The notes under the pieces: generated by a model
Seen by the model: the letters and a program-made list of their open reading frames with translations, nothing else
The model's database searches: none
What the model was told of the DNA's origin: nothing
Program-made: the position numbers and the translations under genes
Part shown: positions 40,302 through 50,028 of the stretch, piece after piece
Numbering within the stretch: position 1 is the stretch's first letter
Layout of the letters: every line of letters starts with the position of its first letter
Source: Setoptus koraiensis
Taxonomy: Eukaryota > Animalia > Arthropoda
DNA length: 64,000 nucleotides
Reading direction: 5' to 3'
Assembly (NCBI GenBank): GCA_048013815.1
Contig: CM106585.1
Coordinates: 11,594,001-11,658,000 of the forward strand

Positions 40302-40475
40302 TACAAAACACATTAGCCTCATACCTCTTTTTGTTTGACTAGTGATCTTCAATAAGAACGATTATAACAATTTCAAGTGTCTCTTATTTAGAATATGTAC
40401 CATAAATTAGGCAGACTACATACTAAGGTAGTATTTAATTGATAAATCTTTCTACATCCGAATCTAGACTCCTGA

Positions 40476-40940
40476 TCACCTTTTCTTCGAACCTTTCTTC
40501 TTCGAATTTCGTTTCAGCTCTCGTCGCCTTTCAATGTTCCTCTGTTTTTTCTTTTTCATCATTTCTTGTACCTGTTCGTGCTTTTTTGTGCGTTCATTCC
40601 ATTTCTTTTTGTGCATTTTCTTGATAGACTCTTTCTTCTTGATAGATTTTTTTATTAAAACTGGATCGTCTTTTATCTTGTCACCTTTAGCCTTGAGCAT
40701 TGCAGCTTTCCAAGTTGTATCATCCTTTATTTTTCTTGCTTTCTCCTCCGGTAGTTTCTTGAGTTTTTCTTGGAATCTAAGAGCTTGGGTAAGTTTCGTT
40801 TTCAAACTATTCTTCTTGAACTTCGCCTGCAGCGGATCGATAAATTTGGGATCATCGGGAATTGAATCAATTTGGTTAAAGATAATCTTCTCTTTCTCCG
40901 AAAATGGAGCCAACACTACATTAGCGTCTTTGATCTTCAT
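40476..40940 (-). CDS. SURF6: SURF6/Rrp14-family nucleolar protein, short form (154 aa) with the C-terminal SURF6 domain
   Basis: Lys-rich, with the SURF6-domain signature W-KAAMLKAKGDKIKDDPVLIKKSIKKKE...KKWNER...KKQRNI. Much shorter than typical family members. Confidence 0.8.
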   Translation of the reverse strand: MKIKDANVVLAPFSEKEKIIFNQIDSIPDDPKFIDPLQAKFKKNSLKTKLTQALRFQEKLKKLPEEKARKIKDDTTWKAAMLKAKGDKIKDDPVLIKKSIKKKESIKKMHKKKWNERTKKHEQVQEMMKKKKQRNIERRRELKRNSKKKGSKKR

Positions 40941-41188
40941 TTTAACAATAGTAGATTGTCTCGTAGAATAATTTTATAGTTAATCCGAAGAACTATAATA
41001 TCTTTTGTAACGCATCGGCGGCCGCATGGACACGTTTTTAATCAGCACGCCTGCTGCGATCATGTGTTTGTGTTGTGTGCGGTTTGCACGAATATCTCAC
41101 ACGTTTTCGAAGATGAATTCATTGGAATCAATACGCGATTCCCAAATTATAAAATCTAATTAAATCAGTGTCATAGGCTAATCAGATG
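40938..41188. promoter_or_regulatory. Bidirectional promoter/5' UTR between SURF6 (-) and DNAJA3 (+); copy A
   Basis: About 245-bp head-to-head spacer. Shares colinear motifs with 47467..47751. Confidence 0.7.
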
Positions 41189-42580
41189 TCTACATTTTTT
41201 CTGAAACACATCGGGAGATGCTCCTCGGCGGTAGGAGACAAGCAGCTTAGATTTACACAATTATTCAATCCCAAATTAACACTACCCAAACAAACGTGGG
41301 CAGAGGAACAAAGCTTCGGAATAAACCAAAAGACAAATATTACGGGACTACGTTCAAGTGTTTTTGGTGCCTACCAAAGACCATCGACATTGTGTTCCAA
41401 TTTTTCATGTACTCACACCAAAAGGTTTTTACATACCACTAGGATATTGAACAAAAGAGACTATTATGATGTATTGGGGGTGGCCAAAAATTCCACTCAG
41501 AAAGACATCAAAAAAGCATATTATGTTTTAGCCAAAAAATATCATCCAGACACAAACAAGGATGACCCACAGGCAGCCAAGAAATTCCAAGAGATTTCTG
41601 AAGCTTATGAAATATTAAGCGACGAGACTAAAAGAAAAAATTACGATTTCACAGGCGCCGCTAATTCTAATCCCAATGCAGGCTTCTCGCGGCATGGGTC
41701 TGCGGGCAATACTTATAGACAGGATGGTTTTGGTTCTTTCACAGACCCAGAAGAGTTGTTTAGAAGAATCTTTCGCGACTTTGAGCAACAATACGGCACG
41801 CCATTTGATAAGGGCGGCAATACCGGCAACGAATACGACGAGTCAAACTGGGGTATGGGTCAGTCACAAGAGATTAGCATGAGCGTGACGTTCAAAGAAG
41901 CTGCCATAGGCTGTAACAAGGAGATTGACATTAATATCGGTGACGTCTGTCCTGTCTGCTCTGGCAGCCGATGTAAACCTGGTTATAAGCCTATCAAGTG
42001 TCCATACTGTCAAGGAACTGGCATAGAGACTATATCGAATGGTCCCTTCATGATGCGATCAACTTGTAGAGTATGTAAAGGTTCGAGAATGTACATAAGA
42101 GATCCTTGTATGGAGTGTAGCGGAAAAGGCCAGACCATACAACGTAGAAGAGTGATAGTTCCTGTGCCAGCGGGAGTAGATGATGGCGAAACAATTAAAA
42201 TGCGGATAGTCAATGATAAAGAAATATTTGTTACATTTAGGGTTGCTAAGAGCTCATATTTTCGACGTGATGACAACGATGTGCACACCGAGGCTGCAAT
42301 TAGTGTTAGTCAAGCTATTCTAGGTGGATCAATCAGAATTGAAGGTTTGTACGAAGATATAACATTGAATATAGAACCAGGCACATCGTCTCATGTAAGA
42401 ATGAGATTACCATCCAAGGGTATTAAACGAATGGATAGTTTTGGCCGTGGTGACCACTATGTTCACATAAAGATTCAAGTGCCAGAAAGACCTACTGCTC
42501 GCCAAAAAGAGTTGATTAAGGAGTTCGCTCAGGCAACCGATACCGAGTCGAAGTTCGGTAAGGTTGATGGTGTGTCCTGA
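41186..42580 (+). CDS. DNAJA3: Mitochondrial DnaJ homolog Tid1 (type I J-protein), intronless, 464 aa to the first stop; possible extension to 42823
   Basis: J-domain DYYDVLGV...YHPDTNK...[16 protein letters not shown]-rich linker, four CxxCxGx(G/R) zinc repeats and the C-terminal peptide-binding domain ([22 protein letters not shown]). The Tid1-type FLHTT motif precedes the J-domain. Confidence 0.93.
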
Positions 42581-43805
42581 CGGGAAAGAGTTCAACGTAG
42601 CCAAGATGATGATCCTGAGGTTGGCGAGGAAAAGGATCTTTTACCGCCAAGATGGTTGTTTTTTCTAGCTGCTGCAATTGGCTGTGGTGTCATCTACTAT
42701 GTTGGACTGAAACTAAATTCTACAAATGTTTACACTTATGAATATTATAATGAGATCAAACCTAAATATGAGATCCCGGAAACGCATTATTCATTGCCGG
42801 TAGATAAAGAAAAGAAAGAATAGAACTTGAAATGAGGCTTCACTCAATAAATTAATCTCAACCTTTCAGTTGAGAACTTGAATGGTTGGCTAGTAAAGCA
42901 AGTTGTGTAATTAATAGATTAGTGAAGTAAGTGTCACAACATTTGCATGGGGTTTTGTCCCTAGAGCACCTTACGAGCTCATAGTTAAAGATTCATGGAG
43001 AATGGTGAATGTAAATCTCTTTCTAGTCACTTCTGATAAGTCAAGGTTGTTTAAGTTATAAAGAAAATTTAGTGTGATGAGTCACGGTTAAAGATTTGTA
43101 TGAATCAAGGTTAAGCACAATGCGGCAGCCCTAGGGACGTTCCCGGGTAACTAGCGACTGTTTTAACGACTCTCTCTATCTCTCTCCCTTTCGCATCATG
43201 TGATGATGTGATTTTCAATGCCAACGCTCTCGAGCGCTTGGAGTTGTCGTGTGTATGCAAAGGCATAAACATGGATGATCTATCGTCTATGTACGTAGTA
43301 TATGTAAATTTCTCGTGAAAGAATGCTCTTGAACGCTCGATTATTTTATCGTGATTCTAATCAGCAAAATTGAATTGGGAGTTTACGTGTGAGTGTTAAC
43401 ATTGAAAACAATTTCATTGCCAACAAAAATAAGTTTAGAGCGCAATCTCAACTCCCTTAGCAGCACCCTCCCCGGATCCTTTGTGATGTTACTACTGTTG
43501 GTTATGACGGCCTCGCAGTCACGCAAGAGGAAAGAGGAACCTAGCCAGATTCAAGTAGATAGATTCTGTCTAAACAACTAACACAAAGGATAAAATGTTT
43601 AACCTGAGTGCGCCTGTCACTAGCCACCTAGCTTGCGATAGCACATAGCGACTCTCTAGTTGCATAGCGATACTAAGCTAGTGGCGTCTATGTGAGCGCG
43701 CCTAGATCGAGTTGCGCGTGTGCCTCAATTGTTCGCTATTGAGGTCAACATCGCAGCATTGAGCGTGCCTCATGAAGACATTCGAATTTTTCCCCCATTA
43801 ATTGT

Positions 43806-45240: not shown

Positions 45241-45525
45241 TCAATCGCGGCTTTCTTTCTTCACTTTATAGGTTTTGACCTCTGCGTGCTTCTTTGCTTC
45301 GTTCTTGACTTTTGGTTTGATGAGCATCCTACTTTTTGAGTTTTTCTTTTTGTTCAATCTTTTATATGGGTCGTTGAAAACTATATCATCTGAGGCCAGA
45401 TCAAATTTGTTGAAAATGACTCTATCTTGTTTGTGAAAAGGAGCGAGCAATTCGGTTATGTAAGCGTCTTTTTCCTTCAGTCTAGCCATGATGTCTGACG
45501 AGGACGGTTTGCTGTTGGTAGCCAT
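45241..45525 (-). CDS. Second SURF6-like ORF (94 aa), N-terminal part only; truncated paralogue or pseudogene
   Basis: RLKEKDAYITELLAPFHKQDRVIFNKFDLASDDIVFNDPY aligns with KIKDANVVLAPFSEKEKIIFNQIDSIPDDPKFIDPL of the 40476..40940 ORF. KDAY recalls the N-terminus of vertebrate SURF6. The ORF stops before the SURF6 domain. Confidence 0.55.
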   Translation of the reverse strand: MATNSKPSSSDIMARLKEKDAYITELLAPFHKQDRVIFNKFDLASDDIVFNDPYKRLNKKKNSKSRMLIKPKVKNEAKKHAEVKTYKVKKESRD

Positions 45526-46102: not shown

Positions 46103-46965
46103 ATGGCACACACGATCTACCTGTTGTTGTTGATAATTGTTCCGCCAATGATATCCAGCTCAGGTAAATATGATGATAAGCACGACTCGGTCAGTATAAC
46201 TAGACTGACACCATGAGTTAAATAGTAAAACAATATAGTTTCCCATACAAATTTCTCCGCATTTCCTCGCTATCTAACATCAATCAGTGTTCGCCATAAA
46301 ATGCTGGACCTGCCAATCAAATGTGGACCCTAAATGCGCTGATCCATTCGACAATACCACTCTGCCCATCACAGATTGTGACGCCTATCCTAGAGATGAT
46401 TTAGGTATGGGTCTTATTGTATATTTCTGGCACATTTTCCACCTTCATCCAGTCGGTCGCCACTAACCTACTCTACTACTATCATTTGTTTTTTACCGAT
46501 AATAGGATTCCAAGACGCTTATGAAGCGGTCCAAGGCAAAGAACATTTCTCCAGGACTTCGGAGCACCTGAGAATCTCTCGGAAGCCAATGTTCTGCAGA
46601 AAGATCAGACAAAAGGTCAAGGGAAACTGGAGAACGATAAGAGACTGCGCCTATCTTGGTGACATTCGAGAAAACAATGGCGACGAAAACAATTGTGTCA
46701 TGAGACAAGGTAAACTTCTCAAGTGACTCCATGCAATTCTATTCATTACCTCTATCTGTGCGCATATTTTAACCAATGTTTTTCATTACTTTTACTCTAA
46801 TTGATTCATGCAGGAATTCATGACACATTTATGGAAAGTTGTCTGTGCAGAAGTAAGGATCTTTGCAACTCCGGACCCATCATCAGTCCATACAACTGTA
46901 TGACACTAACCATCGTGTTACTTGTGGCGTTCGGGTCAATCAAAAATTTCTTAATCGATCATTAA
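46103..46965 (+). CDS. crok: Crooked-like Ly6/three-finger GPI-anchored protein; join(46103..46163,46288..46404,46506..46709,46814..46965), 177 aa
   Basis: Not in the ORF track; built by hand. Signal peptide MAHTIYLLLLIIVPPMISSSVFA, then IKCWTCQSNVDPKCADPFDNTTLPITDC...FCRKIRQKVKGNWRTIRDCAYLG...CVMRQGIHDTFMESCLCRSKDLCNS and a hydrophobic GPI-signal tail. The cysteine spacing and CRKIRQKV..W motif match the Drosophila crooked family. All three introns are GT-AG phase 1 and in frame. Confidence 0.88.
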
Positions 46966-47003: not shown

Positions 47004-47469
47004 TTACGTGAGCTGCATCTTTGTGAAGCAGTCTATTGCCGAGTTTATGGCCACTGGGCCAACTTTGATATTTTTAGGTGGCCTCCTAACTTGATTTATA
47101 TTGGCTAACTTCTTATCTAGGATAGCTGTGTGGGCCTATCGACGAATCCAGACGAAATGCGTAATGTTTTTAGGGATGATGAGAATTTTTGAAAATTTTG
47201 AATTAGATATCGAATTACTTCGTCGCGAGTGAGAATGTTTTAGTTGTTCAGTATTCGTACAATCGTCTAGTATCAGATAGACGTACCTTGGCTTTCTTGT
47301 TTGATTTTTTGCCACCAGCCCTCAGGTGTCTCCTGTTGATTTTCTCCTCCAATTTCTTTGCTAGTTCTCTTTGAGCTCTTCCTTTCTTGAACACTTCCTC
47401 TACTTGTTTCTTCCTAATCTGTTTTGGTTTCTTAAATTTGTTGTTTTTGTGTTTAGCTCCCTTACCCAT
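47004..47469 (-). CDS. Small Lys/Arg-rich protein (104 aa), probably nucleolar, weakly RBIS/C8orf59-like; complement(join(47287..47469,47004..47135))
   Basis: ORF MGKGAKHKNNKFKKPKQ... has donor AAG|GTACGT at 47286. Acceptor GATAG at 47136 continues in frame as AHTAILDKKLANINQVRRPPKNIKVGPVAINSAIDCFTKMQLT*. The family resemblance is from memory and weak. Confidence 0.55.
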
Positions 47470-47751
47470 TTTATCAATTGTAAAATTTATTATATACTAC
47501 TAATGGACAATTGTAGCTTCAAGCCGAAATATTAATATAACTAAATGAGTTTAAGACAACATCTACGATACTTCCATGTGGCACATTTAATGGCACGTTT
47601 TTTTTTGAAGGCACACGATGTTTTCCAATCATGTGTTCATGTTTAGTGCAGCGTTGACTGAACTCACGCGTTGCTACTGAAGAGTTGGCGAATCAATATG
47701 AAATCCCGAATATCCTCCATCTAAAATAAGGTAATCTGTACTCATCCGATG
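47467..47751. promoter_or_regulatory. Bidirectional promoter/5' UTR between the small basic-protein gene (-) and mRpL4 (+); copy B
   Basis: About 280-bp head-to-head spacer. Shares colinear motifs with 40938..41188. Confidence 0.7.
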
Positions 47752-48525
47752 TCTACAATTTTCTTGACACACATCAGGAGTTGCTCCACAGTTGTGGGTC
47801 AGCGACAACTCAAATTTACACATTTATTCAACCCCAAACTAACGCCACCCAAACAAGCATGGGTTGAGGAGTTCAGCTTGAACCAGAAAGAAAAGGTTGG
47901 AATTGTAGACCTTCATCCATGCATTTTTGGCGTCTATCCAAGGCCTGACCGGGTTTCCGAGGTCATAAATTGGCAGAAAGAATATCGCAAGATCAACTTT
48001 ATCTCAATGCCAACTAGAAATGAATTACCTGGTGGAACTAAGAGGCCGTGGCCGCAGAAGGGAACTGGACGAGCTCGTCACAAGAGCGTCAATTCCCCTC
48101 TTTGGTACAAAGGAGGTTGGGCTAGAGGGCCGAGAGGACCGGAAACTAATTTTAGAATGTTAGCAAATCACAGACTCACTAATGCTATGGCATCGATGTT
48201 GACAATCAAATTGGCACAAGACGACCTTGTTATTGTAAGATCAATCAAAGATTTCGAGTCACAAGATGAAAAACGTCTCGAGGAACTGATCGAGGATAGA
48301 AATTGGGGCCCAAGCGTTCTCATAGTAGACAAATGTGATATATTTCCGGAAAACATCTCCGTTGCATCAGAGAATATAAGGCACATCAATCTTATGCCAA
48401 CATTCGGACTGAATGTATTATCTATGGCAAAACATGAAAAACTCATATTAACGTTAGATGCTTTGGAGGACATAGAAGACAAGCTACTCTTCCAATTGAT
48501 GAGAGTCAATCTGAATGAGAGATGA
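47749..48525 (+). CDS. mRpL4: Mitochondrial large ribosomal subunit protein uL4m, intronless
   Basis: QAWVEE...VGIVDLHPCIFGVYPRPD, the L4 loop signature TRNELPGGTKRPWPQKGTGRARH...SPLWYKGGWARGPRGP, LTIKLAQDDL and GLNVLSMAKHEKLILT. Confidence 0.95.
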   Translation: MSTIFLTHIRSCSTVVGQRQLKFTHLFNPKLTPPKQAWVEEFSLNQKEKVGIVDLHPCIFGVYPRPDRVSEVINWQKEYRKINFISMPTRNELPGGTKRPWPQKGTGRARHKSVNSPLWYKGGWARGPRGPETNFRMLANHRLTNAMASMLTIKLAQDDLVIVRSIKDFESQDEKRLEELIEDRNWGPSVLIVDKCDIFPENISVASENIRHINLMPTFGLNVLSMAKHEKLILTLDALEDIEDKLLFQLMRVNLNER

Positions 48526-49169: not shown

Positions 49170-49371
49170 CTTAAATTTGTAGCTCTTTCCAAATTAAAAT
49201 TTGATGTGCCTGAGGATGATTCTCTATTAATTAAATGAATACAATGTAATGGTTATTCTCCGATTTTTGAAATCTTTTATAGAGATTAGTGCTTGTCGTA
49301 CAATAACAATGTGCGAGTTTTTGTGCCCTCAGTCTGTGCCAGAAATCTGTGCTGTGCTTTGCTCTGCAGCT

Positions 49372-49871
49372 NNNNNNNNNNNNNNNNNNNNNNNNNNNNN
49401 NNNNNNNNNNNNNNNNNNNNNNNNNNNNNNNNNNNNNNNNNNNNNNNNNNNNNNNNNNNNNNNNNNNNNNNNNNNNNNNNNNNNNNNNNNNNNNNNNNNN
49501 NNNNNNNNNNNNNNNNNNNNNNNNNNNNNNNNNNNNNNNNNNNNNNNNNNNNNNNNNNNNNNNNNNNNNNNNNNNNNNNNNNNNNNNNNNNNNNNNNNNN
49601 NNNNNNNNNNNNNNNNNNNNNNNNNNNNNNNNNNNNNNNNNNNNNNNNNNNNNNNNNNNNNNNNNNNNNNNNNNNNNNNNNNNNNNNNNNNNNNNNNNNN
49701 NNNNNNNNNNNNNNNNNNNNNNNNNNNNNNNNNNNNNNNNNNNNNNNNNNNNNNNNNNNNNNNNNNNNNNNNNNNNNNNNNNNNNNNNNNNNNNNNNNNN
49801 NNNNNNNNNNNNNNNNNNNNNNNNNNNNNNNNNNNNNNNNNNNNNNNNNNNNNNNNNNNNNNNNNNNNNNN
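49372..49871. other. Assembly gap of exactly 500 N
   Basis: Run of N. The round length indicates a scaffolding placeholder, so true distance and adjacency across it are unverified. Confidence 0.98.
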
Positions 49872-50028
49872 TCGGCTTATCCTGCAGTCCTGCGGAGCCT
49901 CAATAAACTAACCCAATAACGAGTGGGTTAGCTATTGGTTAGCATCAATTTAATGGCTCGGTTACTAGAAAAAAATTGTTTATTTATAATGGTTAGTAAT
50001 TGCCAGCGGGCAGTGCACAACATTCAAC

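Follow-up and report, generated by a model that had tools for sequence, protein, structure and literature searches.

Why should Tid1/DNAJA3, an old nuclear gene for a mitochondrial protein, begin with the N-terminus of a mitochondrial ribosomal protein? The question is raised by a locus of the gall mite Setoptus koraiensis, analysed here in a window of 64,000 nucleotides (assembly GCA_048013815.1, contig CM106585.1, positions 11,594,001 to 11,658,000, forward strand), where the first residues of Tid1 resemble those of mRpL4, the gene for ribosomal protein uL4m, a few kilobases downstream. The best overall explanation, to which we give a probability of roughly 0.8, is that a 5' module of mRpL4 was fused to Tid1 and that sequence has since been exchanged repeatedly between the two genes in eriophyoid mites. 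An original prediction, made from the letters of the window, had noticed the resemblance and read it as the capture of a working presequence together with a piece of uL4m. The observation itself was confirmed and the interpretation was supported, with changes in the extent of the copy, in the fate of the old leader and in the number of events.

Identity of the two genes and extent of their similarity

The Tid1/DNAJA3 gene (41186-42580, + strand) is a single uninterrupted, intronless open reading frame (ORF) of 464 aa. Tid1 proper (41459-42580, +) contains the J domain with an HPD tripeptide readable in the translation (Pfam DnaJ, residues 92-154, E 1.4e-27), a Gly/Phe-rich region, four CxxCxGxG zinc-finger motifs, CMECSGKG among them (DnaJ_CXXCXGXG, residues 255-315, E 7.9e-12), the C-terminal substrate-binding domain (DnaJ_C, residues 229-433, E 1.8e-29) and the stop codon. 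Its best named matches were entries called 'protein tumorous imaginal discs, mitochondrial' from mites, insects and a horseshoe crab (50-67% identity), the nearest named species being the eriophyoid mites Fragariocoptes setiger and Aceria tosichella, and in a tree of mature Tid1 it fell inside the eriophyoid clade with 100/100 support. mRpL4 (47749-48525) lies 6.5 kb away on the same (+) strand. It is likewise intronless, encodes 258 aa and carries the Pfam domain Ribosomal_L4 (E 1.8e-40). Among solved structures it matched human uL4m (PDB 3j7y_F/6nu2_F, E 2e-58), and the human and pig uL4m chains matched residues 26-252 of the query at E 1e-56 to 1e-58.

In a single BLASTP comparison, Tid1 and mRpL4 were identical at 37 of their first 66 residues with zero gaps (E 2e-22). 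The hand counts made earlier over an ungapped alignment, 28/41 and 37/67, were thus reproduced, a recount giving 28/41 for codons 1-41 and 9/25 for codons 42-66. Third-position identity between the copies of the window was 0.61 in codons 1-41 vs 0.40 in codons 42-66, both from small counts. The similarity ends at codon 66-67. The mRpL4-derived leader therefore occupies Tid1 codons 1-67 (41186-41386, +), and the donor segment, which matches it in protein and in DNA, is mRpL4 codons 1-67 (47749-47949, +). Next comes a linker with the Tid1 pre-J segment (codons 68-91, 41387-41458, +), where no similarity to downstream mRpL4 sequence was found over 23 codons (score 7 vs a shuffle mean of 9.8). The junction lies where it had been placed, directly 5' of the Tid1 pre-J motif.

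At the DNA level, the match went beyond the coding part: 41059-41382 and 47628-47945 were 65.5% identical over 328 nt (E 4e-31), which takes in ~125 nt 5' of each ATG. The non-coding part of the duplicate, promoter-proximal DNA and 5' untranslated region (5'UTR), covers 41059-41185 (+) ahead of Tid1 and 47628-47748 (+) ahead of mRpL4, with 85 matches across 127 vs 121 nt, and by itself outscored 300 of 300 shuffles. An extension of the duplicate toward the minus-strand start codons (40921-41058 vs 47450-47627) was not significant, 23 of 300 shuffles reaching the local score. The copying of the N-terminus, as first proposed, stands for codons 1-67, whereas its restriction to codons does not, since the promoter-proximal DNA and 5'UTR match as well.

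Recurrence across Eriophyoidea

The leaders of ~36 eriophyoid Tid1 sequences were compared with mRpL4 N-termini by BLAST, a check that the original prediction had proposed. L4-like leaders were confined to eriophyoids, and the top match of each lay in the same lineage. Leaders derived from L4, ~24 to 115 residues long, are present in at least seven Tid1 lineages of eriophyoids. The L4-derived part has 67 residues in the window and its sister species and also in P0013 (with P0025, decayed), ~115 in L009/P0252, ~50 in P0008, ~43 in P0019, ~43 with an internal deletion in P0023, ~41 in P0003 and ~24 in the P0015 clade. Other lineages, Aceria tosichella included, have short ordinary Tid1 leaders. 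Each L4-like leader bears lineage-specific residues of a particular mRpL4. Capture in this mite therefore holds, but a one-off event does not, since several eriophyoid lineages have leaders matching their own mRpL4.

Pairs of Tid1 and mRpL4 were confirmed in SRR33593474, SRR29837402, SRR29535594 and SRR33927573; the two genes came from the same contig in L002 and L004 and from the same sample in SRR33593474 and SRR33927573. The upstream non-coding DNA again fell within the similarity in four of five pairs. In a maximum-likelihood tree of the N-terminal segment, Tid1 leaders stood beside the mRpL4 of the same lineage, with starred support in several places, and the starred branches force at least six changes. 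Short leaders (P0015 type, P0023) were misplaced by MAFFT, and each leader was projected onto its best mRpL4 partner instead. A constraint uniting all Tid1 leaders in one clade was 143 log-likelihood units worse (approximately unbiased (AU) test, p-AU 8e-5), and one capture without later exchange is rejected at that level. Tree, AU test and BLAST partners all group these paralogous segments by lineage, not by locus, and on the tree of mature Tid1 the L4-like leaders are scattered. Because the leaders of at least seven lineages, with different junctions, each resemble the mRpL4 of their own lineage, these comparisons show that the 5' ends of two unrelated, linked genes have repeatedly exchanged sequence.

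The longest leader was found in L009 (L009:125-535, Logan SRR31346747). It is ~137 aa long, with ~115 residues from mRpL4; the true ORF start is at L009:125, the gene caller having begun the protein at an internal Met. Its first 51 residues matched the mRpL4 of related species at 44/51, and the rest is decayed, in frame, and reaches the GGW-RGPRG region of uL4m. A library-wide HMMER search with mRpL4 residues 1-70 returned solely a Tid1 representative, uL4m proteins or fragments, and P0253. The last, a predicted protein of 1768 aa built of tandem low-complexity repeats, was rejected as a false positive, its score of E 7e-27 being produced by 18 matches of repeats to mRpL4 residues 25-65.

Gene conversion or repeated capture

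The pattern calls for either repeated capture or long-running gene conversion between linked, unrelated genes. What the sequences show is a partial duplication of mRpL4 at its 5' end, taking in ~125 nt of promoter-proximal and 5'UTR sequence, the ATG and the first 66-67 codons; the duplicate now stands in frame ahead of Tid1, upstream of the pre-J segment that belongs to Tid1 itself. We lean slightly toward an old capture that was then kept similar by episodic non-allelic gene conversion, together with in-frame deletions, over fully independent recaptures. In favour of conversion, most loci have Tid1 and mRpL4 linked, many of the leaders have the look of L4 copies that are old and decayed, and the junction at about codon 67 is common to two very distant lineages. 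Furthermore, the L009 leader was 80% identical to the mRpL4 of another species over the first 155 nt, where the differences, mostly at third positions, follow an mRpL4-like pattern, and 63% identical over the next stretch.

The strongest competitor, possible but clearly less probable, is that repeated independent partial duplications without conversion placed a fresh mRpL4 5' module before Tid1 in each lineage. Such recapture would have been eased by the proximity of SURF6, mRpL4, Prefoldin and Tid1 to one another and by local rearrangements, which are frequent. Recapture would fit junctions at ~24 codons (P0015 clade), 41 (P0003), 67 (window and P0013) and ~115 (L009), the nesting of lineages with short ordinary leaders among carriers, and an order and orientation around both genes that vary by locus, SURF6 facing either mRpL4 or Tid1. 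However, it needs at least six in-frame landings at one gene. Although they stand far apart, at either end of the tree, the window and P0013 agree in their junction at about codon 67 and in leader length (90-91 aa), and the old decayed-looking L4 leaders of P0009, P0011 and P0025 suggest an older shared origin.

A single capture in the eriophyoid ancestor, followed by divergence and loss alone, would make the L4-like leaders simple orthologs, and we consider it very unlikely. The four genes do adjoin in many eriophyoid loci, and decayed leaders occur in many lineages. Nevertheless, each leader has the lineage-specific states of its own mRpL4 and is grouped with that gene, monophyly being rejected as given above. 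In addition, the paralogs of the window have a synonymous divergence (dS) of ~1.1, only about 2x the value for the sister species, whereas other eriophyoids are separated from the window by a mature-Tid1 distance that is ~6x larger. Whether by non-allelic conversion or by recapture, we hold at even odds that across Eriophyoidea an mRpL4 promoter-plus-presequence cassette has been repeatedly written onto the 5' end of the linked Tid1.

Conservation and probable transcription of the chimera

It could also be argued that the resemblance to L4 comes from a fragment of a dead gene or from a fault in the assembly, and that the true Tid1 start lies downstream or in another exon. Drift in residues 38-67, with 9/25 identity in codons 42-66 and the loss of the conserved DLHP, would agree with this. 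Against it, the frame is open from 41186 and no in-frame ATG occurs between codon 1 and the J domain, in the window, in the sister species or in other carriers. Because no other in-frame ATG precedes the J domain, translation can start only at the mRpL4-derived ATG. The copies are merely 65% identical and therefore do not represent a collapsed or mis-joined repeat. Selection on the leader and the transcript-like contigs described below add to these points, and we regard a dead fragment or an assembly error as highly improbable.

In the sister species (Logan SRR33593474), the leader is 73% identical over 90 residues and the whole Tid1 87%; the gene order, sulfotransferase / SURF6(-) / Tid1(+), is that of the window, and the mRpL4 found in the same sample is 90% identical. 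Substitutions between the two species were estimated by the Nei-Gojobori method, with significance by Fisher's test. dS was alike (0.50-0.56) for leader, mature Tid1 and mRpL4, and the ratio of nonsynonymous to synonymous divergence (dN/dS), a comparison proposed in the original prediction, was 0.36 in the leader vs 0.10 in mature Tid1 and in mRpL4. The leader ratio is below 1 (p 0.005), and the leader evolves faster than the mature part (p 2e-5). The leader is thus under purifying selection, weaker than in the mature part, as is usual for presequences. Between the Tid1 leader and mRpL4, dS was ~1.0-1.2, roughly 2x the species divergence. The copy, or its last homogenisation, is older than the species split by about that much again, and the chimera has been retained under purifying selection since before that split.

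The junction was present in three independent data sets. Run X1 holds the whole stretch in one contig and is possibly the source of the assembly. Two runs of another study, X4 and X5, are of unrecorded kind; their coverage was limited to 40458-41020 (SURF6) and 41121-42622 (Tid1), neither run covered 41021-41120 or 42623-43300, and the ends matched in both. Because matching ends and coverage confined to transcription units fit transcripts, we treated these contigs as RNA-like. The X4 contig starts at 41121, 65 nt 5' of the ATG, and the X5 contig (41194-41672) extends from the leader over the junction and across the J domain without a single difference. If the contigs are indeed RNA, transcription of the chimera starts at 41121 or further 5'. 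In the proposed mechanism, transcription would begin in the copied upstream DNA and translation at the mRpL4-derived ATG. Three outcomes had been named as fatal to the idea: a misassembled junction, transcripts starting downstream of the duplicated segment, and an N-terminus shared broadly among Tid1 proteins. None of them applies. The junction recurs in independent assemblies and RNA-like contigs, an RNA-like contig begins 5' of the copied ATG, and Tid1 outside Eriophyoidea (~85 proteins) has no such N-terminus.

At the other end of the gene, the RNA-like contigs of the two runs stop at 42620 and 42622, ~40 nt past the Tid1 stop codon. This end coincides with a GAG|GT site and has no AATAAA close to it; it may mark either a poly(A) site or a splice donor.

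Direction of the copying

The segment LFNPK-TPP(R/K)QAWVE...DLHP-IFG-PR-D was kept in all ~50 eriophyoid uL4m recovered and in many other arthropod uL4m, and was recognisable in ticks, insects, a horseshoe crab and a nemertean. Residues 26-252 of mRpL4 aligned to residues 53-279 of human uL4m and lay, from residue 29 on, within the 250-residue deposited chain 6nu2_F. Since the mRpL4 of the window aligns to a deposited uL4m chain, the copy holds part of the mature ribosomal protein, not merely a presequence, as had been predicted. The alignment of bacterial uL4 begins at about residue 46. Among ~85 non-eriophyoid Tid1 proteins (insects, ticks, horseshoe crab, trombidiform mites), no match to the mRpL4 N-terminus was found. 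Because the motif is conserved in uL4m, present in the deposited human chain and absent from non-eriophyoid Tid1, mRpL4 was confirmed as the donor, and the statement that QAWVE...DLHP is conserved mature uL4m and no Tid1 feature also proved correct.

The reverse, an mRpL4 N-terminus taken from Tid1, is conceivable in the P0139/P0152 clade, where the mRpL4 presequence end YLHA recalls the Tid1 motif YLHTS, but its probability for the window is negligible, since there the shared segment is conserved in uL4m from mites to humans, is partly homologous to bacterial uL4 and is absent from Tid1 elsewhere.

The sharing between mRpL4 and Tid1 in that clade (L002 of SRR29837402, P0139, P0152 and P0242-P0250) is limited to the first ~24 residues (MAG-LFNFAKLIRP...YLH), and its mRpL4 copy ends in YLHA where other mRpL4 have LKHT. 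Either a crossover at a short common motif or a transfer in the reverse direction may have occurred there.

Structure of the Tid1 leader

Residues 1-37 of Tid1 are basic, Ser/Thr-rich and presequence-like, with 6 K+R, 1 D+E and 7 S+T, and hold the most conserved block between the copies, QL(R/K)FT-LFNPKLT-PKQ. In several eriophyoid mRpL4 (P0157, P0159, P0142, P0164), the protein starts 3-8 residues before the LFNPK-TPPRQ block and has essentially no separate presequence. Because some eriophyoid mRpL4 have almost nothing ahead of it, this suggests that the LFNPK-type block may itself belong to the import signal.

The counterpart of residues 38-67 in mature uL4m is its N-terminal strand region, whose conserved residues have been lost in the Tid1 copy (VG to IT, DLHP to GLRS); they are probably a functionless, drifting relic of the uL4m N-terminus. 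Residues 68-91 (about 70-91) line up by eye with the complete 19-31-aa leaders of other eriophyoid Tid1, in all of which the motif x-HT(S/T)-x-x-L-x-(R/K)K ends the leader. Between the window and its sister species, dN in this linker (codons 68-91) was 0.038. The linker looks like the ancestral short Tid1 leader, and on that by-eye reading the L4 piece would have been placed ahead of Tid1's own leader, which was kept, not replaced. The fusion upstream of Tid1's own motif, as first described, is thereby upheld, whereas a new leader in place of the old is not, residues ~70-91 resembling the short leader by eye. Residues 1-37, with the retained short basic leader, are the putative mitochondrial import signal, while residues 38-67 would drift as a relic, and through the copied promoter the expression of Tid1 may be tied to that of the mitoribosomal gene.

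Several points weigh against the explanation as a whole. Conversion alone does not explain junctions as different as ~codon 24, 41, 67 and 115, and the same junction at ~67 codons in two distant lineages is odd for independent capture. The N-terminal tree has at most 72 columns, several of its rows are short or long-branched, and the group of Tid1 leaders was defined after the sequences were seen. Some Logan samples may mix mite species: P0003 groups with P0144, and the mRpL4 of its sample is P0148. The RNA nature of X4 and X5, of unrecorded kind, was deduced solely from gene-confined coverage, and the labelled RNA run X7 has no reads on the stretch and tests nothing. Finally, the import role, like any role of the L4 relic, is putative.

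Gene order and neighbouring genes

The distance between Tid1 and mRpL4 is 6.5 kb in the window, 2.3 kb in L004 and 1.9 kb, in divergent orientation, in L002; in SRR33927573 the two genes are on separate contigs. In the window, SURF6 (40476-40940, - strand; Pfam SURF6, E 1.7e-25) and the chimeric Tid1 stand head-to-head, and the 245-nt spacer between them contains the non-coding part of the duplicate. SURF6 faces Tid1 in the window, L001, L004 and L012, and faces mRpL4 in L006 and L002. Because it faces mRpL4 in some loci and the chimeric Tid1 in others, this suggests that a block of SURF6, bidirectional promoter and mRpL4 5' end was duplicated or moved. We also considered a tandem duplication that took in SURF6 along with the mRpL4 5' end, which fits SURF6 facing Tid1 and the presence of a second SURF6-like ORF at 45241-45525.

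This second ORF (94 aa, - strand; counterpart L010:1265-1618 (-)) shares 35% identity with the first 72 residues of the Tid1-adjacent SURF6 (E 6e-8) and has no Pfam match. Its conservation in the sister species is 66% vs 85% for SURF6 proper. Possibly this is a SURF6 paralog, evolving fast or in decay, that remains from the duplication behind the chimera. A small, very basic ORF of 73 aa, starting MGKGAKHKNNKF (47248-47469, -), stands head-to-head with mRpL4; it is kept in the sister species (69 aa; L010:4014-4223 (-)) and belongs to no Pfam family. Between Tid1 and mRpL4, a short ORF at 46287-46466 (+) matches the start of a Quiver/Ly-6-like QVR domain (Pfam E 1.6e-6) and is probably one exon of an intron-containing gene. 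An assembly gap (run of N) at ~49300-49900, immediately 3' of the UCR_14kD gene, gives X-filled ORFs.

Comparison with known systems

Presequence copying is documented in plants: rice rps11-1 took its presequence from atp2, Arabidopsis sdh3 from hsp70 and carrot rps10 from hsp22, the recipients being genes freshly moved from the mitochondrial genome that had no signal before (PMC2631504, citing Kadowaki et al., 1996, EMBO J, and others). As in those cases, the N-terminal targeting region of Tid1 copies an unrelated nuclear gene for a mitochondrial protein, and the donor is retained. However, Tid1 is an ancient nuclear gene and no recent organelle-to-nucleus transfer; it already had a short leader, seemingly kept as residues 70-91. 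Its copy extends from promoter-proximal DNA through the 5'UTR into the mature donor protein, of which it has ~30 residues, and, in an animal, it recurs or is homogenised across a superfamily. In rice and maize, RPS14 and SDHB share one presequence by alternative splicing (cited in PMC2631504). There too, two different mitochondrial proteins have the same targeting sequence, whereas each mite gene has its own diverged genomic copy and, both ORFs being intronless, no splicing is involved.

Among animals, chimeric genes that arose through fusion after a partial duplication are familiar (reviewed in PMC3449122). The mite gene resembles them in that a 5' fragment with regulatory DNA was fused in frame to another gene body, giving it a new N-terminus and promoter. 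A classic chimeric gene of Drosophila is jingwei. Such genes usually add a new gene beside intact parents, unlike the mites, where the same gene pair is involved repeatedly. No non-chimeric Tid1 copy was seen in the window or the fetched loci, and no whole-genome search for a second Tid1 was made.

Interlocus gene conversion between linked duplicates, likewise familiar from animals, has been surveyed in Drosophila (PMC2588116). The mite segments are similar in that they are paralogous, lie a few kb apart and are more alike within than between lineages; they differ in being a 200-450-nt 5' module of otherwise unrelated genes, with conversion tracts that are putative. A full-text literature search found no report of an animal mitochondrial-protein gene taking the promoter and N-terminus of its neighbour, nor of recurrent exchange of such a module. 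The finding is a variant of known processes, not a new kind of system, and its distinctive point is the clade-wide, lineage-matched recurrence.

Gain or swap of organelle targeting is known mostly from plants, in genes whose departure from the organelle genome is recent. In these mites, by contrast, a gene that is old and essential in animals was given its neighbour's promoter, start codon and N-terminus, in many related species and with a range of ages and junctions. For annotation and orthology work, the N-terminal similarity of Tid1 and uL4m in eriophyoids should be taken as real and not as a gene-model error. The species form a natural series for asking how long a donor N-terminus must be for import, how fast the useless rest decays, and whether unrelated genes can have short 5' modules that evolve in concert. 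If the cassette has indeed been written repeatedly onto Tid1, both genes would share regulation and an import signal, their 5' ends evolving in concert for tens of millions of years, and an animal would thus provide a case in which non-homologous genes evolve in concert at a module for targeting and regulation.

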